A DNA stretch of 63,117 nt, counting the filler, from Pelomyxa schiedti (lineage: Eukaryota; Protista; Evosea), in NCBI GenBank assembly GCA_020536535.1. It is 14 parts of 14 records of this genome, joined end to end, with 100 filler letters (N's around TTAATTAATTAA, not from the genome) between each part and the next. Parts side by side here need not be neighbours in the genome. Positions count along the whole stretch, not along the records: positions 12,223 to 44,198 come from JAHLWZ010000262.1; 13 more parts are not named here. One strand, written 5' to 3'. Both the position numbers and the translations under genes were made by a program. This document shows, in pieces, positions 14,242 to 42,438 of the stretch. Below the pieces are notes generated by a model. That model saw nothing but the letters and a program-made list of their open reading frames with translations, did no database searches and was not told the DNA's origin. Each line of letters opens with the position of its first letter. Position 1 is the stretch's first letter.

Positions 14242-17200
14242 ATGCAGGTTCCCACACGGGTCGCTGATGCCGTAGGCATACTGAAAAACCTCGAGGCGAT
14301 GCGATTCCCACCATGCGCACAGCGAACCTTGCGACAGGTAATGTGTGTTGTCGCACTTACAAGCTTGGGTACCCCATGCGAGGGACAGCCACCTCTCACG
14401 AAGCTCTGGGAGACCCTCGTAGAACAAATCGCCAAAGAGAGACTCAACAGACCGCAGGTCGACGGTCTCCTCGCTGCGTGTCAGGCGACACTACAAGCAC
14501 CCAGTGACGCTTTGAAGGAACAGCTCAACCAACTTTACCGCCTGCTCGTCCCCTTCGACATCGAGGAGCTGCTTGACTTGCTATCGAAGACCGCGTCCAC
14601 AGCTCAGCTCGTAAACGGCCAGGACATCATCCTGCTACTAGGAGCCACCGGGTGTGGGAAGTCTACGACGATACAATACCTGTTTGGCTGCCAGATGGTC
14701 CATCAAAAGGTTACAGTTGGGGAGGGCTTCATCAACCACATTTGTGCTGCCCAAACTCCAGGTGAACTCACAGGGGTGGTGTCCAGTTTTGAGGCAAAAT
14801 CAGAGACCAGATACATCACAGCAGTTCAGGTCCAACCAAGTCTAATCCAACCTGAAGGTTATATTACTGTCGAGCCACTTTTCCTGTGTGACACACCAGG
14901 CTTCATGGACAACCGCGGACCTGAGACGGATGTTGCAAATGGGGTTGGATTTGTGCAAGCTGTGAAAACTTGCAAGTCTGTCAGGCCGTTTTTCCTCATT
15001 GACGGAAAAGGCATGGGTAGTCGACTGGACAACCTGAGGCAAATTCTTTCCGTTCTGGCTGGATTAATGCCACAACTTGAGTCTTGGACAGAATGCTTCT
15101 CCTTTGGTTTCACAAAGTTTTCACAAGAAGAAGCCACAAATATACGTGGAAACCTTGAACTTCTCAAGCGTGGATTGACACCTGAAGATTCACAAATCCC
15201 TGGTTTCAAAGCCGTTCTGAATGAGATTCTTCGGCAACACCCTGAAAAAGGTATGCAACGAACTGTGATCATCAACCCACTTGATGGGAAACCTGGTTTG
15301 GTTTTCAAAAAGATCCTTTCCCACGATGCTTTGGACGACCCAAACGAAGTCTTTCAGTTCTTCATTGCTCCTCGTTCCAATTCCGCCCTCACTGAGCAGC
15401 TGCGAAGGCTGCAACTGAATATACCAGAGGCACTCGAGAGGGGGGAATTTGCGTTGGTTTCGTTCAGGCTTGTGCAGCTGGCTAAGCTGGCCAAGGTGCT
15501 CAATAACAAAGCAGATATTCTGCACCTTCTGGAAGAGTGCAAAGAACTCACTAACAAGGAACTTGGACACCAGCTCGACGCTGGGGCACGGCAGCTTCAG
15601 GTATTGATGAAAGATGGGTACCAGGCCACCACGGCGGATCTAGATTCTTTCCTGCGGCCCCTGCAGCTCTTGAGAGGCTGTGACGAGACGCTGGGAATGC
15701 TTCACGAGGCAACAGCGGCTGAGACGCACTCGTCCAGGCTCATGAAATTCTTTTTTGAACAAGTTGCACAGCTGGTGAGAACCTTCCAGGGAGAGAAAGA
15801 TGCACTGTGTGAGGCCAACAAAGTGAGACTCGACAAGCTTGCGTTGCTTGGACCTCACTTTCCAGAGGTCAATGCGCATTTTGATGCATTGCTCGCGTCC
15901 GTTTCCACTACTGTCCAAGGTGCAGTCGCAACAGTACAGGATCTTATTGCTTCAAACCAATTCGACGAGGCACGCCAGACATGGGCGAGGCTGGAGGCTG
16001 CCTTGCAGCGTTTTGCGGTGCACGTGGGGCCAACAGTTACCTCTGAGACCTCCCCCAAGATTCGGGCCTTCTTCTTGGCCCACTTGCAGAAGAGCTCTCA
16101 AGAGGCAGATGAGTGCTTCTGCCTGCAAAGCATGACCTCTGACGTCCAGAAGATATCCGACAGTCTTCAAGTCCTTCACTCTTGCCTGCATACCTATGGC
16201 ATTGGTCAGTTATTGGATTTGAAACAGGTGGCTTCACTTAAAGAGCAGCTGGTTGTGCGACTCAGGACCCAGATTGAACTCCTCCATAACCAGATTGTTG
16301 ATCGATTTTCACAGAGCAACGAGAACTTTGTATACTCTCAATGCAAGCAAGACTTTCTAACTATCAAGGCACTTTGTGGAATACCAAATGTTCCCCGGAC
16401 TGTTGAGCAGCTTTTTGAAAAAACGAAATTCTTTGTTGTTGACCAGACTAACAATATCACAAGACAATTTTCACAAGCTGTGGATGCTCTCAAGAGGGGT
16501 GAAGTCGTGGATTTTACCCGTCTGGCACGGGGAATGAGGCTTTTGAGGGACACTGATTGGCTTGAAGAAGCAATCCCTGGGTGCTATAAATCCGCTTTAT
16601 CTGAAGTTGAAGATATAATCTCACTACAGCTGGATCAGACCGAGAGACAACTCCAAGAAATTCGCCTTGAGCTTGGAGAAGAATCAGAGTTGAAGAAGCT
16701 TGCCTCCATTGTGGGTGTTCTGCATGAAATAACCCCTCTTGAGAGGATACCACTGCCAGCCTTGCATGAGCAGAAATGCCGACTTCTGCAAAGCACGCGA
16801 GATATCCTGAAAGAGATTCTCACAATTATACAAGATACCTTCAACCTTGAGAAATACGCAGTTTCTGCTTTACACCAGGGTGTTGAGACATTACTTCTCC
16901 GAAAGAAAAACATTGAGGGCAGCAGTCCAGCCACCCTATTTTTGGCTGAGAAGGGCTATAAAGATGCCCAGGAAATCACGCGAGCCATTGAAGAGAGCAA
17001 GAACACACTCTCCACATTGACATTGTCCGCAACTGGGACTGGAATGGAGAGTGGAAATATCCAGGGATCCAGTGCAATAGGAGCTGAAGTTCTGACAAGG
17101 CAGCAAGAGCTGGCAGAAAGCATCAAAGCAAAAGAGCTGGACTTGCAGCAGTTCCAGGAGTTATCAGCCTCCAAAATTTTATCATCACAGCAGAGGCAGC

Positions 17201-20200
17201 AGCTCGGAGAACTTGGATTCAGTAGTATAGCCCGCCTTGAGAAAAGCATTGTGGATCAAGTACGGCGATGTGAGACTCTTGAAAGTCAGGGACTGCTTTA
17301 CCAGTTCGACAAAGTGGATCCTGCCAGGGCCGTGGCAGCGATATCATTCATAAAGATCCTCGGTACGCAGTTTCGCTGTGGACTCTACAACGATTTGCAC
17401 TGTGCTCAGATCAAAGAAAAGCTGGAATCGTTCCTGACAAAATACTGTGAAAATTTGGTTGTCCGCGTCCACGGAGCCCTTGACAATATTACAATCCACC
17501 TCAATGGCCAGGCTCAGTCGAAGATTTCAGACGATACTGCCACTCTCCTATCCTTGCTGCAGGAGTTGGTCGAGCTGGAGAAATACCCACTGATGATGGG
17601 GTATTTTTTTAGCAACATCAATGTTCTTGCTAGCTCCCGGGATGCTATCTCAATAATTGCAAAGGACCTAGATGCAAGCATTTCCCAGCATTCCATGAAC
17701 AAGGATGTCAGGAGTCTACAAGCAAAACTTGATATCGTGCAGGCACTGTGCCGTCTTGATGCGGTTTGCTCTAACCAGGACTCCCCCAGTTTCTCAGATT
17801 TGAGAAAAAAGTATCAACCTGAAGCACACAGAGAAATTGGCGAGACGGCTACCAACGCAATGAAGTCGTTGGACAAACGTGAGTGGCAGCAGTTGGCACT
17901 GCTTCTTCATGATATTGAATCCAGCAGTCGTGGCAATCAAGCCACACTAAACGCCATTACCAGACCAATTGAAACGAACCTCATAGACTTCTGCAATGAT
18001 ACTAAGATGAAGGCCATTCTACTTGGGCAAGAGATATCAACTGAGTGGCTTGCCTCCATAACCGACATTGTCTCCCGTCTTGATAGCATCAGGGAGGCCC
18101 TCAAATTTCTGTCCAAGTACCTTCAGCTTCCTGCAGATACTGGATCACAACCAGGTTCTACAGCACCGTCATCAAGCGCAATTCCCAGCAACCCCTACAA
18201 CGACGCCATTGAAACTACGAAGCGAGAACTGTGTCAACAAATGATGACAGCAATGAAGAGTGTTGTTGCATCCATTCACAGTTGTCATTACTTAGAGGCA
18301 AACCAAAAGATGGACGTGGTCAAAAAGGCAAAAGGGATCATGGGCTCCCCTTATCTCTCAGTGGAAGCTGCTAATTCTGTTGATAGTTTCACGGCAACTC
18401 TTTCTGAATCACTCAAGAGCCTTGAGAGATTCTACACCACGGCCGAGGTTGGTGAGTACAGCTTCAAGAACCCCCCAAAAGATGTATATGAGAGATTCAG
18501 GCAAGTGTTTGCAACCAATGCTGAGTGCAAAGAAACATGGGAGAAAATTGAGGATGTGGTACGAGATAAGTTCAGAGCCGAACTGAAGAACATTAAAGGG
18601 CTCAGGACACCAGATGAAAGGGCTTCACTGATGAGAAAAGTTGAATTGGCCCTCAACTTCCTCCCCACACACCTCTCACAGACCTTGGGGGACGAATTGG
18701 CACTTCTAAAAAAAGACTTAAAACAGGAGCAAGAGGATTTGGAGGTGCAAAGGAGCTCAGCTCTTCTTGGAGGGGATGCAGAAGAAATTGAACGAATGTG
18801 GAACACCCTTGTTGCAAGAGAGGGAAGAAGTGGAACGACGGTACGGAAGATGGGACAGGAGATCATCGAGCTGGTAAAGAAACACCAAGTTTTGATGATG
18901 GAGACGTTCCTCTCGTCTGGGGATTTGACCAGTGCTGTTGGGGAGATCAAGAAGGTGTTCTCGTTTCGTGGAATGGCGTCGGCACTGCCAGTCATCAATG
19001 TCCTCCTGAGCAACATGTGCTTCCACATCACAGCACTCCCCCCAAAGCTTTTGCCGATCCTTTCAATCCCATCGCTCACAGTAGAGTCTGACGGCGCTCT
19101 TACCAGCGCCTGGTCGCAACTTGTTACACTTCATGGCATCTGGCTATCTGAAAGCAGCAACTCCGACTTAGTTGCCGCCGTGTTTCAGACTCCCGACTTC
19201 CCTACCAAGGTCGACGAGGCCAAGGAGAATATTGTTGTGTATTTCAGGACCCTCCAGAAAAAAATGTTTACAAGCATGGAGTTGAACAACGTGGAAGGGA
19301 TTCACAGTGTGCTTGACCGAGTCAGTGCACTTACTTCGTTCTTTTCCGTGTGCCAGAAAGTGATGCCCTCCCTTTGGGGATCGTACTCAGTGGTGGTGCA
19401 AGAGGTGAAGAAGTTCTTTGCTGCCAAGACCTCGTTCATCCTTGAAGCAGACTTGTGCGCCACTGGAGTGACAGAATTCGAAAAGACACGAACTGCTTTT
19501 TATGCACTTGTGAAGTCCCATGTCGACCTTTTCCGTGAGTCGTCAGGAATTCAGAAGGCACACCCAGATCTTGCCCTCTCTGCTGAGTTACTTGCAGATA
19601 TGAACTCTTCTCTCGTCGCGAAGATCGCCAAGCTTCACGAAGATGCAATGGTGTTTGTGAATACACGGAAGGGAAGAGGAACTGTCACGGAGAAGAGGAG
19701 GTTCAATGACTGCTTCAAAAGCCTCAAGTCATTCAGGGCATCATTGCCTGGGGAGCCAATGACATCCGCTCTGGACAAGGCAATTTCAGAGATTGAGCAT
19801 GGTATCACTGGTTTGGTGGAACAAATTGACAGGGAACTGTCTATGGAAATGGCAGAAATGACAGGGGCGTCAATCCCCATTGATAGGGTAGCCATCAATC
19901 TTATCAAATTGAAACAGCTCGGTGAGGCCTTCCTCCAGTCCTCAGAGACTGTCTCTGGCCGCATTGACGAGTTCATTTCTCGCTTCAAAGGCGCCTCTGG
20001 AGCCACAGGGTGTTCAAAGCTTGCAAGCTTGCTTGTTGACGAGCCCACAGGCATTGGGGCGAGTGTCGTGCAAGACTGCCCTGCTCTGAAGCTGTCAATG
20101 GCCAACCCAGGTTGTCAAGTCCGTTGCAATACAGCCACTATCAAATACGTTCTTGAGAGGCTACGAAGCGTTGACCCAGGTGATATTGAAAAGGAGAAGC

Positions 20201-21251
20201 TGAAAAAATGTTATGATGCCTTCAGCAAGAAGTATGCAAATCTGAAAAAAGTCCACCTCAAACCGGATCTGGAGAATGGGAAGATTTCTATCCTGGCAGG
20301 AATCAAGAAAATTATAACAGGTATTCACATTGAGCATGATGAAATAGCCTCAGAAAGTGACTTGTATTCTTGCACTGCTATCAACTGGACAGGGCCAATG
20401 AATGATAGCCTTCCAGAACTTCTTGCACACATATTCATGCTGTGGACTCTGTCTCACGCGGGGAACTACTTTGAGATTGCCAGTTTCGTGATAGATGACA
20501 ATGACAAGGACAAATACCTGTACNNNNNNNNNNNNNNNNNNNNNNNNNNNNNNNNNNNNNNNNNNNNNNNNNNNNNNNNNNNNNNNNNNNNNNNNNNNNN
20601 NNNNNNNNNNNNNNNNNNNNNNNATAGCCTTCCAGAACTTCTTGCACACATATTCATGCTGTGGACTCTGTCTCACGCGGGGAACTACTTTGAGATTGCC
20701 AGTTTCGTGATAGATGACAATGACAAGGACAAATACCTGTACATCCCACACCCAGCGCAGGTTGTGGCTATACTTCGAATGCTCGGAGTCGGTTACTCCA
20801 GCCGGAAAGGACTGGGACCAATCAAGAACATGATACAGCTGGGTACTGGAGAAGGCAAGTCCGTCGTCCTTGCAGTGGCGAGTATTGTACTTGCGCTTTA
20901 CGGGATGCAGGTGAGCTGCGCCTGCTACTCGTCGTACCTGAGCGAGAGGGACTGGTCAGACTTCAAGCAGCTATTCACGATGCTCAACGTTGAGTGCCAA
21001 ATACGGTATGGCACGTTCGACGTTCTGTGTGAGGCAATACTCAACAAGAACGGCAACCTGCGGGAAGGGATCAAGAGGCTCATAACTGAAGGAATATGGC
21101 CCATAAAGATGACAGACACAGCAGTACAGCGGCCACACGTTCTGCTTGTGGATGAGATTGACGTGTTCTTCAACAAGGACTTCTACGGCAACGTGTACTC
21201 GCTATCCTCGCCGCTACAGGACCCGTGCATCATGCGGCTCACGGACTTCAT
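14242..21251 (+). CDS. Giant protein A: P-loop GTPase - long helical/coiled-coil region - SecA-like SF2 helicase (3' end missing here, probably 41037-42438)
   Basis: Intronless ORF of more than 2,200 codons. G1 LLGATGCGKSTT, G3 LCDTPGF. SecA_DEAD-like PHPAQV...IQLGTGEGKSVV...YSSYLSERD...YGTF...LLVDEIDVFF. Confidence 0.88.
20405..20742. other. False gap: 119 bp duplicated on both sides of a 100-N gap (20405-20523 = 20624-20742); same tract also at 35707-35825
   Basis: Direct sequence identity. Merging the copies restores a continuous reading frame. Confidence 0.9.
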
Positions 21252-22224
21252 NNNNNNNNNNNNNNNNNNNNNNNNNNNNNNNNNNNNNNNNNNNNNNNNN
21301 NNNNNNNNNNNNNNNNNNNNNNNNNNNNNNNNNNNNNNNNNNNNNNNNNNNCCCTAAGAAATGTGGAGAGTGTAGTCGGTTTGCTCATGTAAGGACCAAC
21401 CACACAGAAACATTACATTACATAGGTACTTCGATGATTATATATCTAACATGTATGTATTCCTACCTCTACATATGATTTATTGAGCCTATTATTGTAA
21501 CAGAACAAAACTTGAGGGTGCTCTTTTGGAAAATATGGCTAAGAAAGGACATTCAGTTGCAAGTTCCGATAATGCCTTGGGACCCCAAGAGTTTGCCACT
21601 GCATGCCTGTAAAAAGGAGCAAACCTTAGAGGCTTTTGAGCTACAAATTCGAGTAAGACCAGCGTACATAAAATAATATGTGTACTTACTTGGGTTGGAA
21701 GTGGTGGGAGAAGGACTTACGTAATTTCTCAATTGCCGCTGCCTGATACTGGATCACAAGGAAACACGCGACCCACACGTTTTTGAGAACACCTGCACCA
21801 CAGTAAGCCCAAATCCTGGACTCACACCGCTAACCATCGTACACCAGTGCCACCACCGGCATAGTCGCGCCCTTGCCCCCGGTTTTTTTGATGAAAATGG
21901 TTTTTTTGGCTTCGCTTATAAAGACACTCCGCAACATTTCCTTTCCTTAAACTTTTTAACTCCGTTCCTTAAACGTTCCTTAAACTCATTAACTCCGTTG
22001 CCTAAACGCGCCGGAAACTCTACAAGCGGGAATAAAAATTGGTTTTATCCCCGGAGGAGGGTTGAAGGGCGATATTCGGTTTTTCATTCAACTTGGAAAC
22101 TATTTTTTTAGGGTTGTTCAAATAATTTTTTCTGCCCATCTTCAAAAAAAAAAAAAAAATACAAGCAAACAAAGAGGCAAACCCGACACCCAAAAAAAGG
22201 ACTCCTCCATAACGCAACAACGGA

Positions 22225-23677: not shown

Positions 23678-23994
23678 AACAAACAAAAAAACTTTCGGTG
23701 AAAAATAGTGAGCTGAATCAAAAAAACACCACGTTTCTAAAGTTTAGCTTCTGTTGGTGAATCGGGCGTAACAACAACAACAACGACAACAACAACGACG
23801 GGTTCCAGATGGTGGAGATTTGGAACGGCCAATGGAGTTTTCTCGAAAATATTAAACAATTTCTTTCTTTGCACCCCAGGGCTGTCTCTCCACCGAAGGT
23901 CATAAATATACAAATATCGTTGGAAGCGTGGCTTAGAGTCACTTGGGAGAAAACGATCGGGAGTCACCGCAACCAGTTTTACTGTGGGCACACA

Positions 23995-26593: not shown

Positions 26594-26730
26594 CAAGCAA
26601 CCATACGCTGATGTTGTCTTCTTGCTTGTTTCTGAAGTCTGAGAGTGTATTCGGCTCAGTGCTGGGCAATACTCATCATAAGTTGTTTTCAAGATTATCT
26701 GGATTGCACAGGAAACAGTGGTAGTCAGTG
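26594..26730. repeat. Diverged direct duplicate of 43903-44146
   Basis: Shared blocks AAGCAACCATAC...TTGTCTTCTTGCTTGTTTCTGAAGTCTG and AAGTTGTTTTCAAGATTATCTGG...CAGGAAACAGTGGTAGTCAGTGATTC. The 26.6-kb copy lacks roughly 110 bp of the middle. Confidence 0.85.
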
Positions 26731-28947: not shown

Positions 28948-29678
28948 GTTTGAGTTTATTTTTTTCCTTGATTGATCAAAGATACTTTGAGAATCAGACC
29001 CCAGTGCCAATACAGTACTTTGTCAGACAAAATCGGAAGGGATATTGGTTCTGATGAAATTAATTTGAAAGAGGGCAGTCCACACATACCTACGCAATTA
29101 GATGCACTTTGGCTGGGAGTAAAGAAGGTGGATATGTCAGAATCGTAACAGAAAGGTTCAGGACTCAGCCCAGCTGGAGTGGAGTTGTTGGAGGAAAGCA
29201 GAAACAGTGTGCCTGCTTATATGATGAAGGTCTACAACCACACATAAGAGGTTCGAAAATCAGGAACATATAAGTTGTCAAAAGTAGTAAAAAAAAAAAC
29301 CTTCCATGTATTTTCCTTTGAATTGGTATTTTGAAAATACATGGAAGGTTTTTTTTTTACTACTTTTTGCCTTGTAGTTGTCTGACATCTCTATTTTTTT
29401 GAAAAGTACAAGCTGAAACAAACCTTGCCTTGTGTAGGCATACAGGGCTTTTGGATTGTTGATTTCCACACATTTGTAACCACATTTCTTTGTGTATTCA
29501 GCACGCATCACAACTTCATTGGCTTTCGTTGAGAGTGGTTTTCGCTTGTCATGGAGTGTGGGTGGTCTTCACTCAAACAAAACCCTTCATTCCGCAGTAC
29601 CTCACACCGGTCAACCTTTTTTTTTGGCAGCTTAGGCAAACTGCAAGCTGCAAAAACAAAGAGGGTGAGCGCGACGGG

Positions 29679-32600
29679 ATGGCCACGGCCAGCGGAGCAC
29701 AGCCACCGCCTACGGCAAGCGTGGCGGGGGAGCTGCGGCGGGTGGTGCGACTGGCAGAGAGGCGGGCCGCGGGGGAGGACGTGGAGGCCGAGGGAGGCGA
29801 GGCGTGGCGGGCCCTGCGAGAGCTAGCAACGGCGGAGGGGCTCTGCACTCAGCAGGCGTCGTCTGTGCTGGACGAGTGCTCGGAGCTGTGGAGGGCGGCG
29901 CCGTCGCCGCTGAGGATGGACAGGCTGAGGGAGCGGCTCGGGGCCTTGAGGCGTATGCTGGTCCCGTTCGACGTGGAAGAGCTCCTGTCGCTACTAGAGA
30001 GGGCCGCCGAGGCCGCGAGGGCCGTGGAGGGGAAGAGCGTAGTCCTGGTGCTCGGCGGCACGGGGTGCGGCAAGTCCACAACCGTGCAGTACCTCTTCGG
30101 CGCGAGGATGGCGCTGAAAGACGTGCGCGTGGAGCAGGGCGTAGTGCCACACGTTTCCGTGGAAGGGAAGCCGCCACCAGAGCTGGAACACATCGTCGCC
30201 AGCTTCGAGGCTATGTCTGAGACCAGGCACGTCGCGGTGGTGGAAGTCAACCCCGACCTCCTTGTAGGGCTGCCAGGCCTGGACACGACGGACGACGGAA
30301 GCTGCGGCAACAGGTTGTTCCTGTGTGACACGCCAGGTTTTGGTGACAGCCGCGGCCCCGAGGTCGACGTGGCCAACGCCTTCGGGCTGGTCAAGGCCCT
30401 GCAAGGGTGCCACTCGGTTTGGCCCCTCCTGCTCGTTGAGTCGACAGACATCATGGCCGAGCGGCAGCAGAAACTTAGGCAGGTACTTGCGATGCTCGAG
30501 GATCTCATCCCCACGCTGGCTCCCTACGCCTGCTGCTTCTCCTTCGGTTTCACCAAGTTCTCTGCGGAGGACAGCGCCACGATCCGGGGCCAGCTCGAGA
30601 CCCTGCAGCGTGGCCTCGTCCAGGACTCGTCATCCGGAACCGGATTCAGGGTGATGCTCAACGAGATGCTGAAGCAGCACAGTGGGCGCATATCAAAGTG
30701 TCTGGTAATCAACCCCCTGGACAGGAACCCTCGCGAGGTTTACAGGAAGGTACTGGCACATCCGCCGATAAAAGAACCAACAGAGGTGTTCCGCATCTGC
30801 ATTCCCCCAAGTTCAAAGTCCGCCTTCAGCCAGCAGATGGAGACACAGCTGTGCTGTGTTACCAGAGCCATTCAGAGGGAAGAGTTCCTGCTTGTGAGGA
30901 CCTGGGTTACCAACCTGGAAAAACTCGTGATAGCTGCAGTAGGAGAGTGGGGAGAGGTAACGCACTGGCTGACCAGGTGCAAGGACGCAGCAAGGGAGCA
31001 GCTCCAAGAGAAGGTGAACGCTGGAGCCCAGCAAGCACGGAGGTACATGGACATCAGGTCAACGAAGCCCACAGCTGAGGACCTCGACTCGCTGGTGAGG
31101 TCTTACCAGTTTCTAGATCACTGCGACAGCATCCTTTCTGATGCTCTGGGTGACCAGAAGTTCTCTCTTCAACTCGAGAGGTGCCTCGAGGAACAGGTAC
31201 TTGAAGTGCTCCACGAAAGCCTGATGGAGGGTTATGACCCCCTGTCACAGGCAAACCAAGTGTGCCTGGAAAAGCTCTTGGCACTTTGCCCGCACTTCAG
31301 AACCGCCAGAGAAACGTACCACAAGATGGTTCCCAGGGTGCATGAGAGCCTGGCCTCTGAGGTGAGCAAAGTGAAATGCTCCGTTTCCTCTGGTGACTTC
31401 GCTGGGGCTGTGCTTGGTTCCAGGTTGCTGAAGGATACACTGGTGCGATTCGAGGCCCACGTGGAACCCACCGCCGCAACGCGCAGTATCGGCCAGATCG
31501 AGTCCCATTTCCTCACCCACCTGCGGGATGTGTTTCACACCACTGAGAGGTGCTGCTGCGTTGGGGCCCACTTTGATAAGGGGAGCGAGGAGCAACTCTC
31601 TCGGGGTTTGTCCGTTCTACAGGTCTGCATCGACGCCACTCACAACGTCAAAGAGCTGGCCCAGGTCTCGGAGCAGGCATCGGACCTGAAGGGACAGCTG
31701 GTGTTCCAGATCACGACACAGATGGAGAACCTCCACACGCAGATCACACAGCAAGAAATCAAGGGGAAGCTCGATTTCTCACGCTGCAGGCAGCAGTTCC
31801 TCACGATGAAGGTGCTCTGGTCCCTGCCTTTCACTCATGCTGCCGCTACTGGTACTGCTGCCTTCACTCCACTCCAGACAACTAAGGGTGGTATCAGACA
31901 GATTTACTCCAGAACACAGAGTTTCTTTGCCACACAGGTCCACAGCCTGGTGTCAGATTTTGTGGACACCTTCGACGGCTTGCACGCGGAAGAGTCTGTC
32001 GATCTGTCACCCTTGACCCGCCGTCTGAAGCAGCTGAAATTGAACGAGTGGCTTGAGGAAGCCATCCCTGGCTGTTGCACATCTGCCATGCGTGAAGTCG
32101 AAGACTGCCTCAAGGAGCATATGGAAAGCCATGGACGATGGTTGGATGACGTTCACCTCGATGTTGACTGCAACGCAGATTTAACACAGCTCACGCCAAC
32201 GCTTCTGTTTCTGGAGGCAGTCACCCCTCTTGAGGCAATCCCACTCGCAGCCGTAGTGGAGATGAAGAAAAAGCTTCTGGAGCGCATTAGAGGACTTCTT
32301 GGCGCTGTTCTAGACGGAATCCAGGACGCCTTCGACCTTGAGAAGCACTCCCTCTCGGCGCTGCTCTGCGAGGTCGAAAACCTGAGGGCCACGAAATCCA
32401 AGATGGAGGCTGGCAGCCCTGCCTATCTGTTCCTTGCAGAGAAGGGCTACCGAGATGTCAGAGAGCTCGAGCGCGCCATCGAAGACAACAAGGGTGCCCT
32501 GTCTGCCCTGGTAGGCCCGGCGGACCTGGTGGAATCCACAAATAAAATGGAGCTCCAGTTGAAGCGTTTCCGGGAGCTGCAGGCATCGTGGGTACTCACG

Positions 32601-35600
32601 CCCCAGCAGAGGCAGCTTCTCTTGGGGCTCAAAGTCACCAGCATCGTCCGGCTCGACAGGTGCATCGAGGAGAAAGTGCGGCGTTATGAGGCATTAGATA
32701 GGCAGGGCCTGCTTTACAACTTTGACCAAGTGGACCCGAACCACGTGGTGGACTCACTCTCTTTCATGAAGGTGCTATCGAAGGAGCTCCGCTGCGGGCT
32801 ATACAACGATCTCCATTGTACCCAGATCAAAAGAAGGATAGAGGAGTTCATGACTAGATACTGTGACACTCTGGCCCAAAGGGTGTCAAGGGGGCTTGAG
32901 AATATCTCAGACAACATCCATCATGACGTGCTGCTGAAAATCTCTGCAGATGATGTGGCAGCTCTCCTGGACCTGTTACCTGAACTGAAGGAGCTGGTGA
33001 GCAACCCCACCCTGAAGCAGTTCTTTCGCGGGCACAGCAGCATGGTTGAGGAGATCAAAGCCACCCTCTCACAGATTGCCTCTTATCTGGAGCACAACAG
33101 TGAGGTATCCGTCAAAGGCATCACAACAAAACTGGCAAATGTGTCCTCTCTCTGTCCTATGGAGACCATCCTCTGGTCTGACAGCCGTCCTTTCTCTCAA
33201 TTGAGGAGGGCACTCCTAGACCAGCAGCAAGAGCAGATAAAACACAGTGCCAGAGAAGTATTTGTAGCACTGGAAAAAGACAGGTGGATGGAAGTGGGGC
33301 AATGCCTATCCGAAATCTGTGAAAGTGGAAGCCAAGCAACCATTCGGAGTTCCATGGCGCAAGTGAACACCCAGCTTCAGAGGTACTGTAATGATCTGAA
33401 AATACAAGTTTCTCAGCTCTCTCCAGAGGTCTCAGACCAGTGGTTTTCCCTGCTTTCTAACATTGGCTCTTGTCTAGACAAGTTGAAAATGGCGGTTGAA
33501 GTTCTATCAACATGCAGGTTGCCACATGACACGCCTTCAAGCTGCAGGCCAGACCCCACATCCCAGCACAGACTTGTGAAAGACATTGAGCTGGAGTGTT
33601 CTAAGTCCATTCTCAGTGCCATGGCATCCCTGGTGAGCCTTGTCTGGAAGTGTCAGTACACAGAGGCTCTGACGAAGGTGGAAATCGTCAAAAAAGCTCA
33701 GAAAGCCATTAGATCGCACCTCTCGGAAGAGGCTTCACACAGTGTTGACGATTTTGAAGTCTCCCTTCGTGCTTCGTTCCAAAGTCTGATTGACCATTAC
33801 AAATCTGTGAAGATAGTCTGTTATCATCAGATTTTTTCTCCAAAGCTTGTCTTCAAACAACTCAGTCCCACATTCTCCTCCAGCATGCTATGCAAAGAAA
33901 ACTGGGAAGCAATCGAGGATGCCATCAAGCACAGATTTCATGTTGACATTGCACAGATACAAGAAATGCAAGCTCCCTTTGAACAAAAGCAAAAATTACT
34001 GAGAGAGGTTGCTCCTTTGCACTTTCTCCCTGAAACCCTCAGTTCTCCACTTGAGAAGGAGATTTCACAGATAACTGCCTCGTTGGATGCAGAGCACAAT
34101 AGGTTGATAACTGAAAAGTTGTCAGCCTTTGAAAATGAAGATCCCCCTGAAATTTTACGAATTTGGAACACGTTACTAAGAGGAGAAGGAAGAAGTGGGC
34201 CGATGGTCCAAAATATGGAAGTGGAGATAGATAAGATATTAAGAACGATGTGTACTTTCGCAGTGACTTCTTTCTCCAGTGGTAACTTCACAGTTAGTTT
34301 TCAGAATATTAAAAAAGTATTTACACTCTCTGAGCTTCAAAGTGATATTTCAAGTATTCACATCCCAATTGATGATATGTGCTTATCTGTGCATAAGTCT
34401 CTAGAAAAGACTTTCTCTTTCTTCTCAGATCAAACTCTTTCAGTTGAACTGGATTCTACCCTTAGTGATGCCCTGGCACAAATAATTGAGCTCCACAAAG
34501 TCTGGCAGTCGTATTCTGATTTACCTGACTTTTTGAGGATCCTTATTGGCTCAGATTTCACACAGAGAGTGAATAACACAATGGAGAGCATTGGTGCCTA
34601 TTTAAGAAAACTTGAAGGGGACCTAAATTCCTGCCTGTCGTCCTTTGATGTTACTCACCTCCAAACTGTTCTGGATCGGGTTCATTCCATTCCTTTCTTT
34701 TCAACTCTTTGTCACCAAGTTGTACCTTCATTATCTTGGAAGGATTTCTATTCCTTCTGCTTGGAGAAAGTGCATGACACCCTTGAATCTGTCCGGGCCT
34801 TTATCTTGGAAGTGGAAATTTGTAATCCTTCAATATCATACCTAGATAAGGGAAGCCTTGTGTGCCAACCCATTAAGTCAAGGCTCAACTTTCTAAAACA
34901 TTTATGGACACTAAAAATTAAACACCAAGACCTTAGATTAACACCAAAAATAATTGAAGAACAAACAAGCATAGTTTTTGGTAAGATAACCAACATTTCT
35001 CAGTGCATGATTGGCATTGTAAAGGAGTATAAGCTTACAGTAAGGTTCGAGGATAAACTTGTAGCTTCAAAACTATTTCACAGCTATTTCACCAGCTTGA
35101 GGATATATGCAGAGCAGCTGGAGGAACCTTTTTGTGCATTCATACAAATGAGTGTCAATGAAGTTAAGAGAAATCTATGGGCTTTAATTGAATCTGGGAA
35201 AAAAAACCTGCAAATGCTATCAGATGTATCCAGAGTTGCAGAAGAACTCATTGCCCTTAAACAAACTGGTGAACATCTATTCTATTCTGAAGAGGTAACA
35301 ATTTTCATTGAAGCCTTCATTCAGGAGTTCAAACAACGCCATTGCAGCCTATATAAACTAGGGTGTGCATTAATTGGTGATAACTCTGGCATGGGTATTG
35401 TGGTTGCACACGACTCTTCCAGTTTGAAGGCCTTTCTCCCCCACACCAGAGTTTTTGCTCCTGAAACAAGAAGTATGGAATACATTCTTACAAAACTAGA
35501 AGGAGAGGATATTGACTCCACTCAAATTGCACAGCTTTTAGTAAAGTTTGATTCTACATACTCTAATCTACGGAGGATGTTTCTTGTGGCTGATTTAGAG

Positions 35601-38084
35601 ACAAGCCAGAGATCTGTAATCAAACTGATAAAGAATTTCTCTTTGACTACTGAGCAAAATCTCGGAGTGCCTAAAGTAGATAGGCAATGCACAGGAGAAA
35701 TGACTGATAGCCTTCCAGAACTTCTTGCACACATATTCATGCTGTGGACTCTGTCTCACGCGGGGAACTACTTTGAGATTGCCAGTTTCGTGATAGATGA
35801 CAATGACAAGGACAAATACCTGTACATTCCACACCCAGCGCAGGTTGTGGCTATACTTCGGATGCTCGGAGTTGGCTACAAAAGCAACACCAAAGTAAAG
35901 TCAGTACCGGGGCTGATCAAGAACATCATTCAGTTGCAGACAGAGGAGGGCAAGTCGGTGGTGCTTGGTGTGGTGAGCATCGTGCTGGCACTTTACGGGA
36001 TGCAAGTGACCTGTGCGTGCTATTCGTCGGACCTGTGTGAAAGGGACTGGTCAGATTTCAAGCACATGTTTTCTCTGCTGGATGTGGACCTTTACATTCA
36101 GCATGGAACGTTCGACGTTCTGTGTGAGGCAGTACTTAACAAGAATGGTGACCTGAGGGAAGGGATCAAGAGGCTCATAACTGAAGGAATATGGCCGGTG
36201 AGGGTGGAAGGTCCTGCCGAAAGGCCACACGTTCTGCTTGTGGATGAGATTGACGTGTTCTTCAACAAGGACTTCTACGGCAACGTGTACTCGCTATCCT
36301 CGCCGCTACAGGACCCGTGCATCATGCGGCTCACGGACTTCATCTGGGAAAGCAGGGCAACTGTAACAGCGGAGCAGGTGCAGGCCACGCCAGCATATAA
36401 GCAATGCGTCACCAAGCTCGGCGATTGGTCGTTCCTTGTGGATTCTGCGGTGGCCGACATGCTGCTGGCACTCAAGACATACTCGTCACACGACTACATT
36501 GTCAGCGACGGCAAGATCGGATACAAGGAACAGGATGGCGTGTCGTTCTCGGTTGTGTTTGGGTACAACACTCTGTTTGCGTATTATCACGAGGTGGACC
36601 AGGGTAACATCACCAGACCCACTCTTGAGCTGAACGTCGGCCTCATTGTGCGTGCCGGCTCGTTCTCTTATGCTGAGCTTCCAAAGAAGTTCTCGTGCAT
36701 CATGGGTGTGACTGGGACCCTTGAGCACCTCAGCCCAGTTGAGAAGGAAATCATGAGGGAGACCTACGGCATCGCAAAGGAGACTTACATCCCCTCCGTC
36801 TATGGCGAAACCCACAGGACGTTTGCTCTGAATCGGGACATCAAGATCGTTGAGAAGGAACGCCATTTCGCCGAGATCTCCGCTGAGATCAAGAGCCGCA
36901 TCCAGGGGCGCACCCCTGGCACATCCAGGGCTGTGCTTGTGTTCTTTGAGTCCAGGAAGGTACTCATGGAATTCTACCGCCTCGAGCACACAAAGTTTGT
37001 CATTCCCTTCAAAATCATCACTGAGGAGGGGAGTAGGATGCAGAGGAAGGCGCTCCTCAACAGTCCATGCCGGCCTGGGCATGTCCTCTTATTGACCTCT
37101 AGTTTGGGTCTCAGACTGGAATTTTCTTCATTTGCCAACTATGGTTTGCATGTAATCCAGACTTTTTTGTATGAAAACTGGGCTACTGAAGAACAAATTA
37201 TCAGAAGAGCAACTCACTTCTACTCAGAGGTTTCCTTCAGCATTGTATTACTGGATGAGAGTCTCCAAAGAATGGGCATGGGCCCAGCTGAGGTGCAATC
37301 AATAAGAAACTCAGAAGCTATCTACAGCACATTGATGAAGTATAGATGCCACTTCTACAACAGGGCTTGCACAGAAAATAGTAAATTCCTCGGTATCGCC
37401 TTGGTTGAGCACACTGAATTGCAGGAATTTGTTCATAGTCTCTACATAACTCAAAATTCTGAAACAGCCAAGTCGCACTTACAACAAAAGAACATCAGCA
37501 TCAACAAACACCGGAGTATCCTTGTGTGCCCAAAAGTCAAGACTCAAAAAGATCCCCCACTTGGGCAAATATGTACACTGTTACCACCAACCAAATCCCC
37601 CCTTGTTACCAAATTTCAACCAGTAATGAATAGAGTTATTATTTTGATGGTAGATGCCTCCAATAGTGCTGTTCTTGAGGATATTAAAAATTCTTTGATC
37701 TTATTTCTACTGGAGAGCCTTGAGGGAGTACTGATATGTATTATTTCTTTTTCAGAGGGTGCATACATACAGTGCCCCTTTACAAGGATTAAAACTGAAC
37801 TGATAAGTGCTACCCAAGCCAAAGACTTTTGTCACACTAAGGGAAAAGTGAATGTACTTGCAGCTTTTGAAAAGGCAAAAGCTTCAATCAGAAGCATTCC
37901 CACTGAATTTTTTTCACCATGCTTTTTTTTCATATTATCTTGTTGTGATGCCAAGATAGGTACAGACCTACAGAAGATAAAATCCCTTGTAACACATCTC
38001 TCTTTCTATCAACAGACTTTTCTAACTTATCCAGATACCTGCACAAGCGACCCTTACAGGCATTTTTCTTGGCTCCTCATCTGA
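29679..38084 (+). CDS. Giant protein B: P-loop GTPase - helical region - degenerate SecA-like helicase - vWA (2,801-aa unspliced ORF; probably extends by splicing to about 39427)
   Basis: Paralogue of A throughout: GGTGCGKSTT, LCDTPGF, VDEIDVFF, GVTGTL, VLVFFE. Walker A reads QTEEGKS and motif VI is lost. C-terminal vWA IILMVDASNS...ISFSEGAYIQCPFT. Confidence 0.88.
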   Translation: MATASGAQPPPTASVAGELRRVVRLAERRAAGEDVEAEGGEAWRALRELATAEGLCTQQASSVLDECSELWRAAPSPLRMDRLRERLGALRRMLVPFDVEELLSLLERAAEAARAVEGKSVVLVLGGTGCGKSTTVQYLFGARMALKDVRVEQGVVPHVSVEGKPPPELEHIVASFEAMSETRHVAVVEVNPDLLVGLPGLDTTDDGSCGNRLFLCDTPGFGDSRGPEVDVANAFGLVKALQGCHSVWPLLLVESTDIMAERQQKLRQVLAMLEDLIPTLAPYACCFSFGFTKFSAEDSATIRGQLETLQRGLVQDSSSGTGFRVMLNEMLKQHSGRISKCLVINPLDRNPREVYRKVLAHPPIKEPTEVFRICIPPSSKSAFSQQMETQLCCVTRAIQREEFLLVRTWVTNLEKLVIAAVGEWGEVTHWLTRCKDAAREQLQEKVNAGAQQARRYMDIRSTKPTAEDLDSLVRSYQFLDHCDSILSDALGDQKFSLQLERCLEEQVLEVLHESLMEGYDPLSQANQVCLEKLLALCPHFRTARETYHKMVPRVHESLASEVSKVKCSVSSGDFAGAVLGSRLLKDTLVRFEAHVEPTAATRSIGQIESHFLTHLRDVFHTTERCCCVGAHFDKGSEEQLSRGLSVLQVCIDATHNVKELAQVSEQASDLKGQLVFQITTQMENLHTQITQQEIKGKLDFSRCRQQFLTMKVLWSLPFTHAAATGTAAFTPLQTTKGGIRQIYSRTQSFFATQVHSLVSDFVDTFDGLHAEESVDLSPLTRRLKQLKLNEWLEEAIPGCCTSAMREVEDCLKEHMESHGRWLDDVHLDVDCNADLTQLTPTLLFLEAVTPLEAIPLAAVVEMKKKLLERIRGLLGAVLDGIQDAFDLEKHSLSALLCEVENLRATKSKMEAGSPAYLFLAEKGYRDVRELERAIEDNKGALSALVGPADLVESTNKMELQLKRFRELQASWVLTPQQRQLLLGLKVTSIVRLDRCIEEKVRRYEALDRQGLLYNFDQVDPNHVVDSLSFMKVLSKELRCGLYNDLHCTQIKRRIEEFMTRYCDTLAQRVSRGLENISDNIHHDVLLKISADDVAALLDLLPELKELVSNPTLKQFFRGHSSMVEEIKATLSQIASYLEHNSEVSVKGITTKLANVSSLCPMETILWSDSRPFSQLRRALLDQQQEQIKHSAREVFVALEKDRWMEVGQCLSEICESGSQATIRSSMAQVNTQLQRYCNDLKIQVSQLSPEVSDQWFSLLSNIGSCLDKLKMAVEVLSTCRLPHDTPSSCRPDPTSQHRLVKDIELECSKSILSAMASLVSLVWKCQYTEALTKVEIVKKAQKAIRSHLSEEASHSVDDFEVSLRASFQSLIDHYKSVKIVCYHQIFSPKLVFKQLSPTFSSSMLCKENWEAIEDAIKHRFHVDIAQIQEMQAPFEQKQKLLREVAPLHFLPETLSSPLEKEISQITASLDAEHNRLITEKLSAFENEDPPEILRIWNTLLRGEGRSGPMVQNMEVEIDKILRTMCTFAVTSFSSGNFTVSFQNIKKVFTLSELQSDISSIHIPIDDMCLSVHKSLEKTFSFFSDQTLSVELDSTLSDALAQIIELHKVWQSYSDLPDFLRILIGSDFTQRVNNTMESIGAYLRKLEGDLNSCLSSFDVTHLQTVLDRVHSIPFFSTLCHQVVPSLSWKDFYSFCLEKVHDTLESVRAFILEVEICNPSISYLDKGSLVCQPIKSRLNFLKHLWTLKIKHQDLRLTPKIIEEQTSIVFGKITNISQCMIGIVKEYKLTVRFEDKLVASKLFHSYFTSLRIYAEQLEEPFCAFIQMSVNEVKRNLWALIESGKKNLQMLSDVSRVAEELIALKQTGEHLFYSEEVTIFIEAFIQEFKQRHCSLYKLGCALIGDNSGMGIVVAHDSSSLKAFLPHTRVFAPETRSMEYILTKLEGEDIDSTQIAQLLVKFDSTYSNLRRMFLVADLETSQRSVIKLIKNFSLTTEQNLGVPKVDRQCTGEMTDSLPELLAHIFMLWTLSHAGNYFEIASFVIDDNDKDKYLYIPHPAQVVAILRMLGVGYKSNTKVKSVPGLIKNIIQLQTEEGKSVVLGVVSIVLALYGMQVTCACYSSDLCERDWSDFKHMFSLLDVDLYIQHGTFDVLCEAVLNKNGDLREGIKRLITEGIWPVRVEGPAERPHVLLVDEIDVFFNKDFYGNVYSLSSPLQDPCIMRLTDFIWESRATVTAEQVQATPAYKQCVTKLGDWSFLVDSAVADMLLALKTYSSHDYIVSDGKIGYKEQDGVSFSVVFGYNTLFAYYHEVDQGNITRPTLELNVGLIVRAGSFSYAELPKKFSCIMGVTGTLEHLSPVEKEIMRETYGIAKETYIPSVYGETHRTFALNRDIKIVEKERHFAEISAEIKSRIQGRTPGTSRAVLVFFESRKVLMEFYRLEHTKFVIPFKIITEEGSRMQRKALLNSPCRPGHVLLLTSSLGLRLEFSSFANYGLHVIQTFLYENWATEEQIIRRATHFYSEVSFSIVLLDESLQRMGMGPAEVQSIRNSEAIYSTLMKYRCHFYNRACTENSKFLGIALVEHTELQEFVHSLYITQNSETAKSHLQQKNISINKHRSILVCPKVKTQKDPPLGQICTLLPPTKSPLVTKFQPVMNRVIILMVDASNSAVLEDIKNSLILFLLESLEGVLICIISFSEGAYIQCPFTRIKTELISATQAKDFCHTKGKVNVLAAFEKAKASIRSIPTEFFSPCFFFILSCCDAKIGTDLQKIKSLVTHLSFYQQTFLTYPDTCTSDPYRHFSWLLI

Positions 38085-39427: not shown

Positions 39428-40236
39428 TGTGTGGCAATTTTCGAAAAGAAGCACCCTGAAAAAGAAGGGGTCAACCTCCCACATAATTTTCTCTATTCCA
39501 CGAAATACAGGGAGAATACAAAGCCTGTAAGTGCTGTTCCATCGAGTGCGTTCGTTATTTATCAGCATAACCAACAGTCTAACAAATACCGAGTGGCGGC
39601 CTGGGGACACACTCCCAACTAAGCAACACCCTCTAATGCTCCATAAGTAACAACACAAGTGATTTGGAACTTCCAGTCTGTTTGGTACTTCTAAATATGT
39701 GTTGCACTTCCACAGTCACCAAGATTCCACATATCTGAATGATGCAAACTGGTTTGTTGGGCACAGCCGCTTTCAGCTACAGCCCATACGAATACAGGAA
39801 AAGAAATCAAATGTACTCACTATTTTACGAGTCTCCTCTGCTTTTTCTAGAATCATAGATTCATAGCATTTTTTTATATACTCCTGCTGTCTAACCATCA
39901 GCCTCAGAGGTCTCATTGCTCTTATTAAGAAAAGTAAACGACTACAATAACAATAAACCTCAAAATTCGTTCGTTTGCTTCTATCTGCAATTGTGTTTAG
40001 TGCATGGCTCCGAGAACAGCTAGGTCGTGGCACTATAGCTACCATGATGTGGATTACACTGTATTGACATCAAGTTTCTTCACACCGAATTCGTCTTGTT
40101 TCCCAAGAAACTTGTTCCCGGCCAACACCAGTCAAAACGCTTGAATAACGACCCTGATTTCACACTCATTTCCTTTTTTTTCTTCACAGTCGAACGGCAC
40201 TGGCTCATCAGTGTGCTTCAAAAAAAAAGTGTGGCA

Positions 40237-40936
40237 ATGGCACATCCCTTGTTGCACACCTTGGGGCCCACAATCGACAAGTCACTTCTCGTAGTTCTTG
40301 TCGATGTCAGCACTAGTGTCCAGACCATTAGTTCGTTCCTCCGAGCCGTTTTGGCCCAGGCAGCTGCTACTTGTAATTGGGAAATTATCGAGTATAACAC
40401 TGAAGCCAGGAGAGTCTGCACGTTCACAAATAGCTCAGAGAAGGTGCTTCTAGCAATTCAAGGATTCCATCAAATACCAGCAAGCTCTGACGGTGGTCCC
40501 AACCTTGCTGCCGCACTCAATATGGCGTCCTCTGTGGTTCTAAAAGCACCACCTCTAGCGAACATTGCTGTAATTATTATCACAGGAAGCCAGTTGTCTC
40601 CATCAGTCTCCATACCTTATAATAATCTGAGACAGTGGTTGATTCCACCACCTGCGATATTTGTGGTAACTGTTGGACCACTACCCATGGAGGGAACTGT
40701 TCGTTCCTCCTTACCTGGAGCCAGATACTTTAGACTTCAAAATTACCCCACCCTCTTGCCCTACCTGTTTACAGCCATGGGTTCTGGCAACACAGCCGAG
40801 CTGATGGATATCTCATTTTCACAACTTCCGTGTGCTCTTCAGAGGTTCACTGACCCAGTGTCACTGGCCGTTACCATCCGACCTCACTCTGTGCTTGGAA
40901 CAGTGCCCACGGTATGAGCCACCCCTGTGTGCTGCC
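40237..40936 (+). CDS. Fourth vWA paralogue (5' exon of another vWA-IFI44-like gene; continues into gap)
   Basis: LLVVLVDVSTS (intact DxSxS), WEIIEYNTEARRVCTFT, GPNLAAALNMA, VIIITGS, AIFVVTVG. The 3' 121 bp are shared with 13217-13337. Confidence 0.75.
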
Positions 40937-41036
40937 NNNNNNNNNNNNNNNNNNNNNNNNNNNNNNNNNNNNNNNNNNNNNNNNNNNNNNNNNNNNNNNN
41001 NNNNNNNNNNNNNNNNNNNNNNNNNNNNNNNNNNNN

Positions 41037-42438
41037 TCGGGACATCAAGATCGTTGAGAAGGAACGCCATTTCGCCGAGATCTCCGCTGAGATCAAGAGC
41101 CGCATCCAGGGGCGCACCCCTGGCACATCCAGGGCTGTGCTTGTGTTCTTTGAGTCCCGGGAGACCCTCCTCAACTATTACCGCCTCGAGCAGATCAACT
41201 TTGTCACTCCCTTCAACATCCTCACTGAGACAGCAAACGAAAAGGAGAAGCGAGACCTGATCAAGATGGCGAGCCGACCCGAGCAGGTAACGTTGCTGAC
41301 TCGTTGTTTTGGCCGAGGCACGGATTTCATATCCTACAGCTCGACAGTGAACGCTAATGGAGGTGTGCACGTAATTCAGACATTTTTGTCTGAGGAGCGA
41401 TCTGAGGAAGTTCAGATCATTGGCAGAACAGCTCGGCAGGGACAGGAGGGCTCGTTTAGCATGGTCCTGCTTGATGAGGATTTGGAGAAATACGACCTGC
41501 GGGCACCAGAGATAAAGGGTATACGAGACTCTGGGATTTACCATGATACCCTGGACAAGCACAGGAATGCGTTCTTTGACAGAACCTATGAAGAAAACAC
41601 CAGGTTCATCGGCGTAGCCTTGGCTGAACACAACAACTCGTTGGAGTTTGTAAACAGCCTCTTCACAGCAAACCTGGCCTCAGTCAGGACCTTCTTGGGA
41701 GAGAGAAACAAGAAGCCTGTTGTTGTCAACTCTCGCACCATTGTCTTGATGGATGCCACAGGGTCAATGAGCTCACTCCTGCAAAAGGTGAAAAATACAG
41801 TGGGCACTATGTTTGAAAGGGCCATGGCCATTCTTGAAGAGAACTCATGCAATCGGAACTGCTTCCAGCTTCAGTTTGTCGTGTACCGCGACTATGACTG
41901 TGGTGTTGACGATGTTCTGCAGACATCGTCGTGGACTTCCAATCCAGTGGAACTTCGCGACTTCATGGACAAGATAGTGGCGAAGGGTGGAGCTGACTGG
42001 GAGGAGGCCGTCGAACTGGGCCTGTGGCATGCAAATGAAGAGGCCAAGAAGATGCCAATCTCTCAGGTGATACTTATTGCTGACGCTCCAGCCAAGACCG
42101 TTGCCCAAATCACTGATTACCGCAACAGCTATGGTGGGGAGGGCATGTGGTGCAGGTCCAAGTTTGGTGCTGCCACACACTGGGAGGAACAAGCTCTCGC
42201 ACTCAATTCCCGTGGCGTGCATGTGCACTGCTTCTATATAGACAACAGGGTGGCCGAAAACTTCGGCAAGATCGCGGCTGTGGGTGGTGGACAGTGTGCT
42301 CTCTTGAACGTGAACGCTGCCTCTGGCGCTGACGATCTTACGAATTGTGTCACACAGGTAATCCTGGGGGATGTTGGACACCAGTCTGGTAAGGGAGACA
42401 CATTCATCGAGCAGTACAAGCTCAAGTATCACCTTTGA
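41037..42438 (+). CDS. C-terminal part of a giant protein (probably A): intact SecA-like helicase C-lobe plus vWA with MIDAS
   Basis: VLVFFES, LLTRCFGRGTDF, GGVHVIQTF, QIIGRTARQGQEGS. vWA IVLMDATGSM...FVVYRDYD...GGADWEEAVELGL...ILIADAP. The first 121 bp are identical to 36833-36953. Confidence 0.85.

Follow-up and report, generated by a model that had tools for sequence, protein, structure and literature searches.

SecA is regarded as a translocase of bacteria and plastids. Giant SecA_DEAD proteins from Omnitrophota and Actinobacteria, together with secondary SecA_DEAD proteins from the Planctomycetota-Verrucomicrobiota-Chlamydiota (PVC) group, are thought to act unlike the housekeeping SecA (bioRxiv 10.1101/2023.11.21.568195; PMC4452313). 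These bacterial proteins, which are linked to secretion, are anchored in the membrane by numerous transmembrane helices. A gene from the anaerobic amoeba Pelomyxa schiedti, hereafter gene A, resembles them in encoding a very large protein with a SecA-type motor and no recognised SecA scaffold/wing domain, but its product has no transmembrane segment and carries a GTPase-like and a vWA domain. The gene lies within a window of 63,117 nucleotides (the whole stretch of DNA that was analysed, filler included; all positions count along it), on the 31,976-bp scaffold JAHLWZ010000262.1 of assembly GCA_020536535.1 (positions 12223-44198). Gene A is quite probably one intron-less reading frame of 8,682 nt that was broken into four contigs by the assembly.

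The scaffold comprises five contigs, with four 100-N spacers between them:

12223-13116, contig c0
13217-20523, contig c1
20624-21251, contig c2
21352-40936, contig c3
41037-44198, contig c4

According to the genome paper, HiSeq, MiSeq 2x300 and Nanopore reads from amplified single cells were all assembled by SPAdes (--sc, k up to 121), and the contigs were then scaffolded by P_RNA_scaffolder with 100-N spacers. This program joins two contigs on the basis of RNA read pairs with unique mapping on each of them; the link is accepted provided that the implied intron does not reach a maximum length, and 100 N are inserted otherwise (PMC5834899). As the three gaps between the parts of gene A correspond to RNA-pair links, they are not genomic adjacencies.

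A preliminary description of the window, made from the sequence alone, had proposed that gene A can be put together again from four segments by means of two overlaps. Direct comparison confirms that both are exact over 121 nt: 21131-21251, at the end of c2, equals 36223-36343, and 41037-41157, at the start of c4, equals 36833-36953. Self-comparison of the scaffold reveals two others, one of 119 nt between the end of c1 and the start of c2 across the first gap of the gene (20405-20523 and 20624-20742) and one of 121 nt between the start of c1 (13217-13337) and the reverse complement of the end of c3 (40816-40936). Overlaps of exactly 121 nt are not fortuitous, since they are those of adjacent edges in a k=121 de Bruijn graph. 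The gap at 20524-20623 is not real: its flanks dovetail, and the true sequence is c1 followed by c2 minus the duplicate. The flanks of 21252-21351 and those of 40937-41036 are not genomic neighbours. The parts of gene A and the sequences between them are as follows:

14242..20523, + strand, gene A part 1 (c1), amino acids 1-2094, open frame without stop
~14614-15246, + strand, GTPase-like domain in gene A, with P-loop GATGCGKS at 14641-14664 and DTPG at 14890-14901
20524..20742, no strand, 100-N spacer (20524-20623) and duplicated 119-nt overlap (20624-20742), removed in the join
20743..21251, + strand, gene A part 2 (c2), with the SecA-type Walker A GTGEGKS at 20842-20862 and Walker B VDEID at 21148-21162
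21252..21351, no strand, 100-N spacer put in by the RNA-pair scaffolder; the end of c2 overlaps 36223-36343, not 21352 onward
36223..36953, + strand, shared tract R, 731 nt inside the contig of gene B, giving amino acids 2224-2467 of A, with GVTGTL at 36705-36722
36344-36832, + strand, non-overlapping core of tract R used in the join
40937..41036, no strand, 100-N spacer put in by the RNA-pair scaffolder; the start of c4 overlaps 36833-36953 and the end of c3 equals the start of c1 in reverse complement
41037..42438, + strand, gene A part 4 (c4), with FGRGTDF at 41308-41328, QIIGRTARQG at 41413-41442 and the stop codon at 42436-42438
~41719-42435, + strand, vWA domain in c4, with DATGS at 41752-41766

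When joined as 14242-20523 + 20743-21251 + 36344-36832 + 41037-42438, these parts give 8,682 nt that encode 2,893 aa and a stop, without any internal stop codon. The motifs listed in the preliminary description are all found in the product (GTGEGKS at residue 2128, VDEID at 2230, GVTGTL at 2385, FGRGTDF at 2518, QIIGRTARQG at 2553 and DATGS at 2666). Conservation of the frame across the join is weak evidence alone, as the tract and both of its exits are homologous and share one common frame in A and in its paralogue B. Alignment of rejoined A with homologues shows no indel at the joins, including the one at residues 2094/2095, where none is found in eight homologues. The alignments with homologues come within 2-6 residues of both termini: residues 22-2891 align to residues 23-2905 of the 2911 of homologue P0006, and residues 23-2891 to residues 137-3049 of the 3054 of homologue P0004.

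The segment 36344-36832 had been considered as a collapsed sequence common to A and B, for which doubled read depth was expected over 36223-36953. This was examined using Logan k=31 contigs from three DNA runs of one sample (X1, X2 and X3) and one RNA run (X4), aligned with 35600-37400 at a likeness of 80%. One contig of 800 nt spans 36157-36953 in the three DNA runs and shows no difference inside 36223-36953; its 13 differences are all located at 36197-36222, where it matches the version of A. The depth of this contig (44, 89 and 15.3 in X1, X2 and X3, respectively) matches the sum (50.5, 86.8 and 15.7) of the depths of the left contigs of A (32.4, 58.8 and 8.97) and B (18.1, 28 and 6.71), i.e. 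two copies, as had been predicted. Exactly two contigs enter the tract and exactly two leave it, the latter at 36924-36953, with no third branch. One exit continues as B (depths of 26.2, 38.7 and 18.6). The contig of the other, which leads into c4 (31.4, 67.6 and 22.2), carries 18 differences as far as 37025, after which its loose end finds a single match in the window, at 41230 in c4. The k=31 contigs thus have their loose ends precisely at positions 20367 and 41230 of A. In run X3, a 493-nt contig with the A form bridges c1 and c2: its first 17 letters are those of 20380-20396 and the other 476 nt are those of 20397-20523 + 20743-21091, the exact length after collapse of the overlap. The RNA run yielded two contigs, of 157 and 265 nt, its coverage being too low to span the tract, and nothing on the flanks of B; 10 A-specific letters (those of 21121-21130) followed by the shared tract place the junction between c2 and the tract in the RNA library.

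The formation of the scaffold can be pictured in the following way. The 731-nt ATPase stretch of A being identical to that of B, SPAdes with k=121 would have placed it once, in the contig of B, leaving the left and right parts of A to end in 121-nt overlaps with the tract. RNA read pairs from the A transcript would then have led P_RNA_scaffolder to link the contigs and to insert 100 N. As the tract is assembled only inside c3, mates from c2 or c4 that pair with the tract link both contigs to c3, and the order c2, c3, c4 is, from the published method, the output that would be expected from a gene A transcript. The linear order of the scaffold, which puts 19.6 kb of the contig of B in the middle of gene A, is not that of the genome, and the assembly artefact at gene A is ordinary and explained. 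The 100-N spacers of this assembly correspond to RNA-pair links and may wrap the contigs of one gene around another gene; this misordering arises when paralogues share an identical tract, and is likely elsewhere in the P. schiedti assembly as well as in other assemblies scaffolded by P_RNA_scaffolder.

The sister paralogue that holds the tract is located on c3:

29676..38084, + strand, gene B, 2,802 aa from the first ATG, 43% identical to A at the amino acid level
35688..37025, + strand, mosaic A-like patch in B (gene-conversion tract), delimited by blastn and codon-aligned identity

Gene B has kept the GTPase motifs but reads QTEEGKS at Walker A and has lost motifs V and VI and the metal ion-dependent adhesion site (MIDAS), and it fails the family-invariant residues at all of these positions. 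The NCBI model of B (P0001; 2,661 aa, 31224-39384) runs through predicted introns, and its product is 100% identical to that of open reading frame (ORF) B. It starts 516 codons past the first ATG of the open frame and is therefore devoid of the GTPase domain. A tree was built on the N-terminal domain, a region untouched by conversion; in it, A and B are sisters with 100% support, the branch of B being twice as long. Within the patch of B, identity to A (blastn) reaches 96% at 35688-35825, 84% at 35707-36343 as a whole, 100% in tract R and 91% at 36833-37025. Codon-aligned identities of A and B follow the same gradation:

Most of the gene, overall ~0.45, third position ~0.3
B ~35640-36250, overall 0.73-0.85, third position 0.46-0.80
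B 36252-36850, overall 1.00, third position 1.00
B 36852-37001, overall 0.90, third position 0.86
B past 37002, overall 0.56, third position 0.38-0.46

The pattern is that of a nested gene-conversion mosaic, in which a very recent core of 731 nt lies inside an older patch of ~1.3 kb. The patch scores 0.93 bits/aa and so resembles the family far more closely than the remainder of B does, which makes A the probable donor. Having lost its ATPase and metal-site residues, gene B would be a motor-dead partner, a decoy or a decaying copy.

The motor of A was described from its motifs as SecA-like and its C-terminus as a vWA domain, and both attributions hold. Pfam SecA_DEAD is found on c2 (20626-21249; E=6e-10, 39.3 bits for a cutoff of 24.6), and P-loop_SecA (30.5 bits, cutoff 27) and VWA_4 (33.2 bits, cutoff 27) are found on c4 (41038-42435 for the former), where Helicase_C stays below its cutoff (20.8 bits for 23.5). 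Searching all PDB chains with the motor-vWA part of homologue P0002, which is 54-57% identical to the pieces of A, retrieves only SecA and SecA2, over motifs I/Ia and V/VI (E ~1e-10). In the AlphaFold model of this part of P0002 (pLDDT 83), computed from an alignment of 45 sequences including the pieces of A, the top 36 PDB matches found by Foldseek are all SecA (E from 7e-18 to 4e-10), the next class being at 4e-8. VIA-align gives a Z of 29.6 over 511 residues for SecA versus ~22 over ~320 residues for DEAD-box helicases. The alignment with SecA thus covers ~190 residues more than that with the helicases, which indicates that more than the bare motor is in common. It extends to residue ~740 of the chain. 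The model includes an insertion of ~130 aa between motifs II and III, at the position of the preprotein-binding domain (PPXD) of SecA, and a long helix (residues 579-620) after the second nucleotide-binding domain (NBD2, lobe 2), followed by the vWA domain. Walker A TGEGKS, DExD, GVTGTL, FGRGTDF, QIxGRTARQG and the MIDAS DxTxS are all present in A and at least 90% conserved among the 45 sequences. The vWA domain carries a DxTxS variant of the MIDAS (DATGS) and a later conserved Asp, and the fold matches include a vWA domain of solved structure.

Gene A has no Pfam match to SecA_PP_bind, SecA_SW or SEC-C, and neither the wing domain of SecA nor its C-terminal zinc/SecB-binding tail was detected; at the place of the SecA wing domain lies a vWA domain, which forms the C-terminus. 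As the wing domain and the tail were not detected, the product of gene A is not a SecA orthologue. It shares with bacterial SecA and SecA2 a two-lobe DEAD-type motor with motifs I, Ia, II, III, V and VI, but here this motor belongs to a cytosolic eukaryotic protein of ~2,900 aa with GTPase and vWA domains. The protein has no transmembrane segment and is predicted to be soluble, and no partner of the SecY type is implied.

The N-terminal GTPase-like domain, which had also been proposed, is supported by fold matches and conserved motifs. The model of residues 1-500 of A (pLDDT 88) has its best PDB matches with GIMAP7 (E=4e-5), GBP1 and Toc34, and also matches dynamin-like GTPases. The G1 P-loop, the switch-I Thr and the G3 DxxG (DTPG) are invariant in 47 homologues. 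GIMAP, GBP and Toc34 (septin- or dynamin-related TRAFAC GTPases) are the best fold matches, but with low TM-scores (0.25-0.5), and the N-terminal domain of A differs from them in matching no Pfam family at threshold and in lacking the G4 Asp. At the G4 position, both A and B read FTKFS, where the T and K are conserved and the guanine-specifying Asp is absent, so that guanine specificity is not established. No Pfam family was found at E<0.01 in the first 2,094 aa of A, with only generic P-loop matches at E<5. A helical middle region of ~1,700 aa without any recognised domain follows, for which the ESM Atlas provides no credible relative (best score of 0.64).

Gene A is a new, previously unmodelled member of a conserved and widespread family of giant proteins (~2,900-3,100 aa) that associate a GTPase-like domain, a helical region, a SecA-like motor and a vWA domain. 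Relatives of 2,000-3,600 aa display the same layout, with 30-43% identity over the whole protein and the same invariant motor and MIDAS residues. Such hypothetical proteins had been mentioned for ciliates and other microbial eukaryotes; they are indeed found in the ciliates Blepharisma and Tetrahymena, but also in bdelloid and monogonont rotifers (Adineta, Rotaria, Brachionus), Hydra, Reticulomyxa (foraminifera), Arcella, Hexamita (diplomonads), Chrysophaeum, many metagenomes and a clade of bacteria of the intracellular type. Some relatives harbour additional U-box, GBP, jacalin or ABC/AAA domains, none of which is present in A. The clade P0004-P0012, including some U-box proteins, is encoded on bacterial contigs that carry ribosomal-protein genes, rRNA-methylase genes and a Coxiella-family gene; A and B are not nested in this clade. 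The presence of relatives on such contigs suggests that the family has been transferred between eukaryotes and intracellular bacteria. Labels in UniProt and NCBI are automatic ('SecA family profile domain-containing protein', 'SecA DEAD-like N-terminal domain-containing'), and a full-text literature search of limited coverage returned only papers on bacterial SecA_DEAD proteins, with no description of or experiment on the eukaryotic family. The family is thus present in databases but apparently uncharacterised and undescribed.

Two full-length relatives lie among housekeeping genes on bacterial contigs, L002 10001-19141 (3,046 aa, U-box) and L003 618-9353 (2,911 aa). On L003 and its 142-kb twin, the relative is followed by two genes, of 171 aa and 1,398 aa, the second with a C-terminal domain of a Coxiella family.

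The left part of A very probably pairs with 41037-42438, as judged from depth ranks, conservation and motif coherence. The left contig of A is deeper than that of B, and the exit into c4 deeper than that into B, in all three DNA runs; in two of them the depths of the left part of A and of c4 are close (32.4 vs 31.4 and 58.8 vs 67.6). The c4 product scores 0.73 bits/aa over 411 aligned residues, versus 0.16 for the exit of B (92 homologues), so that c4 matches the rest of A in conservation and the exit of B matches the rest of B in degeneracy. The conserved right half c4 thus fits the conserved gene A, whose identity to homologue P0002 over the whole length is 40%, versus 30% for B. An intact Walker A in the left part of A goes with intact motifs V and VI and MIDAS in c4, and QTEEGKS in the left part of B with the loss of these three motifs in its right part. 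SPAdes, which was given the MiSeq 2x300 and Nanopore reads, threaded B through the tract; as there are two copies and B is already threaded, the left part of A and c4 are left as the other pair. In a crossed pairing, A would run through the tract into 36954-38084 and B into 41158-42438, the contig of B being mis-threaded. The k-mer graph alone, with its two entries and two exits, allows either arrangement, base composition does not discriminate between them, and the order of the RNA-pair scaffolding is identical under both. However, crossing would give one protein an intact Walker A with dead motifs V and VI and the other a degenerate Walker A with intact V and VI, would associate a conserved half with a divergent half in both genes and would go against the depth ranks of the three runs. 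Moreover, SPAdes had 2x300 and Nanopore reads at its disposal for threading a repeat of 731 nt. The crossed arrangement is therefore very unlikely, and A-left followed by the tract and c4 is retained.

The scaffold might alternatively derive from a bacterial associate and not from the nuclear genome of the amoeba. Neither giant ORF (14242-21251 and 29676-38084) contains an intron along its more than 8 kb, the genes of this species having 7.4 introns on average (genome paper), close relatives are carried by bacterial contigs and Pelomyxa hosts many prokaryotic symbionts. However, A and B form a sister pair that lies outside the bacterial clade, the scaffold passed the decontamination made by the authors of the genome and its contigs are linked by RNA-seq pairs from single-cell cDNA. 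Furthermore, the ~8 kb between the giant genes contain few long ORFs and no bacterial housekeeping gene was seen. A bacterial origin is thus highly improbable.

It is also highly improbable that gene A ends elsewhere and that 41037-42438 is part of a third paralogue, or of a gene fragment, left unassembled apart from this piece. Single-cell assemblies are incomplete and c4 is attached only by a 121-nt overlap and RNA pairs, but at 80% likeness two contigs alone enter the tract and two leave it, its depth is that of two copies and not three, and the database contains no other P. schiedti protein more than 50% identical to the c4 product. Least credible of all is a chimeric contig in which B would have been threaded through A sequence without any gene conversion: the tract resembles the family much more than the remainder of B does and single-cell amplification does produce chimeras, but B-specific letters (36197-36222 and 36954 onward) abut the tract in the k=121 contig, separate k=31 contigs from the B flanks share 30 nt with each end of the tract contig, the depth of the tract is the sum of those of both genes and the graded flanks (74-85%) have the look of an older conversion.

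The reconstruction of gene A as a single frame is well supported but not proven, and several points weigh against it or its interpretation. No k=31 contig of the four runs crosses the whole 731-nt tract, and no read or transcript that does so was available, so that the pairing of the left and right parts is indirect. The DNA runs come from one sample, probably that of the assembly itself, made of amplified single cells, and their depth is noisy: in X3, the right-hand exits are twice as deep as the left-hand entries. As the contigs drop rare variants, a few differences between A and B within the tract cannot be excluded. The content of G+C at third codon positions (GC3) and the codon usage of the four flanks do not discriminate between pairings, the GC3 of B itself ranging from 0.38 to 0.80 along the gene. 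The protein database contains neither a long A model (at least ~1,150 aa) nor a transcript-derived protein that spans the tract; residues 1400-2094 of A return only the model of B from it, and the C-terminal piece nothing above 50% identity. Lastly, the SecA-like fold is that modelled for homologue P0002, not for A itself, and a translocase or unfoldase function, like the roles of GTPase sensor and substrate-binding vWA put forward in the preliminary description, is proposed solely from domain composition.

The public 687-aa model at 40237-42438 crosses the spacer 40937-41036 and is chimeric, as it fuses a small vWA gene to the C-terminal piece of A. This small gene and four others are located next to the giant genes:

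13239-13997, - strand, stand-alone vWA gene (Pfam VWA/VWA_2), divergently upstream of A
40096-40914, + strand, stand-alone vWA gene (Pfam VWA/VWA_2), ~2 kb downstream of B
12225-12620, - strand, small P-loop NTPase-like ORF
27095-27682, - strand, small P-loop NTPase-like ORF
38449-39102, + strand, small P-loop NTPase-like ORF, fused to the C-terminus of B via predicted short introns in the public B model

The two stand-alone vWA genes share 38-39% identity. They finish in identical sequence, which covers the final ~100 coding nt and 19 nt past the stop (13217-13337 and the reverse complement of 40816-40936), and both contigs end there; this is a second collapsed or converted tract. The three small P-loop ORFs, which adjoin the giant genes, are paralogous (28-35% identical) and have weak matches to P-loops of the dynamin, IIGP or septin type. 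A 98-nt inverted repeat (96% identity, with weaker similarity to ~140 nt) is found at 13951-14048, where it covers the start of the upstream vWA gene, and at 42480-42577, 42 nt past the stop of A. Rejoined gene A is thus flanked by inverted copies, possibly at the boundary of a segmental duplication. Towards the right end of the scaffold, 43690-43910 is a short-period tandem or low-complexity repeat with many offset self-matches, and the end of c0 (13075-13116) is also of low complexity.

From its domains, the following mode of action can be proposed for the product of A. Nucleotide-dependent assembly of the GTPase domain would position the protein on a target, the metal site of the vWA domain would hold a ligand and the ATP-driven, SecA-like motor would clamp a polypeptide and pull on it in the cytosol, no membrane channel being involved. 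A broader scenario, which is speculative and rather unlikely as a whole, would make it a channel-independent cytosolic polypeptide puller of the SecA type, gated by a GIMAP/GBP-like GTPase and involved in cell-autonomous defence or control of intracellular bacteria. Exchange of the family would have taken place between Legionellales/Coxiella-like intracellular bacteria, with their U-box versions, and protists or small animals. The intact A and the conversion-patched, motor-dead B of Pelomyxa would form an active/decoy pair, and the products of the neighbouring vWA and P-loop genes would cooperate with it. The arguments for a role in defence or symbiont control are circumstantial: the GIMAP/GBP-like fold, lineage-specific expansions, the addition of U-box, GBP or jacalin domains, exchange with intracellular bacteria and the maintenance in frame of a paralogue with a dead motor. 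PADLOC defence models give only marginal P-loop or helicase matches (E>0.002) for the pieces of A and its small neighbours, and hence no support for defence. The Pelomyxa cell is packed with endosymbionts.

Rejoining the contigs recovers a gene of 2,893 aa and exposes both the chimeric 687-aa model and the N-terminally truncated model of B. The pair of A and B, one with a live motor and the other with a dead one, provides a natural contrast. As SecA is otherwise considered to be a bacterial and plastid translocase, a cytosolic SecA-like motor that shares one protein with a vWA domain and a GTPase of immune type would be a reasonable first target for biochemistry. The family to which A belongs is large and widely scattered, and its members are giant proteins of eukaryotes that possess a true SecA-like motor.

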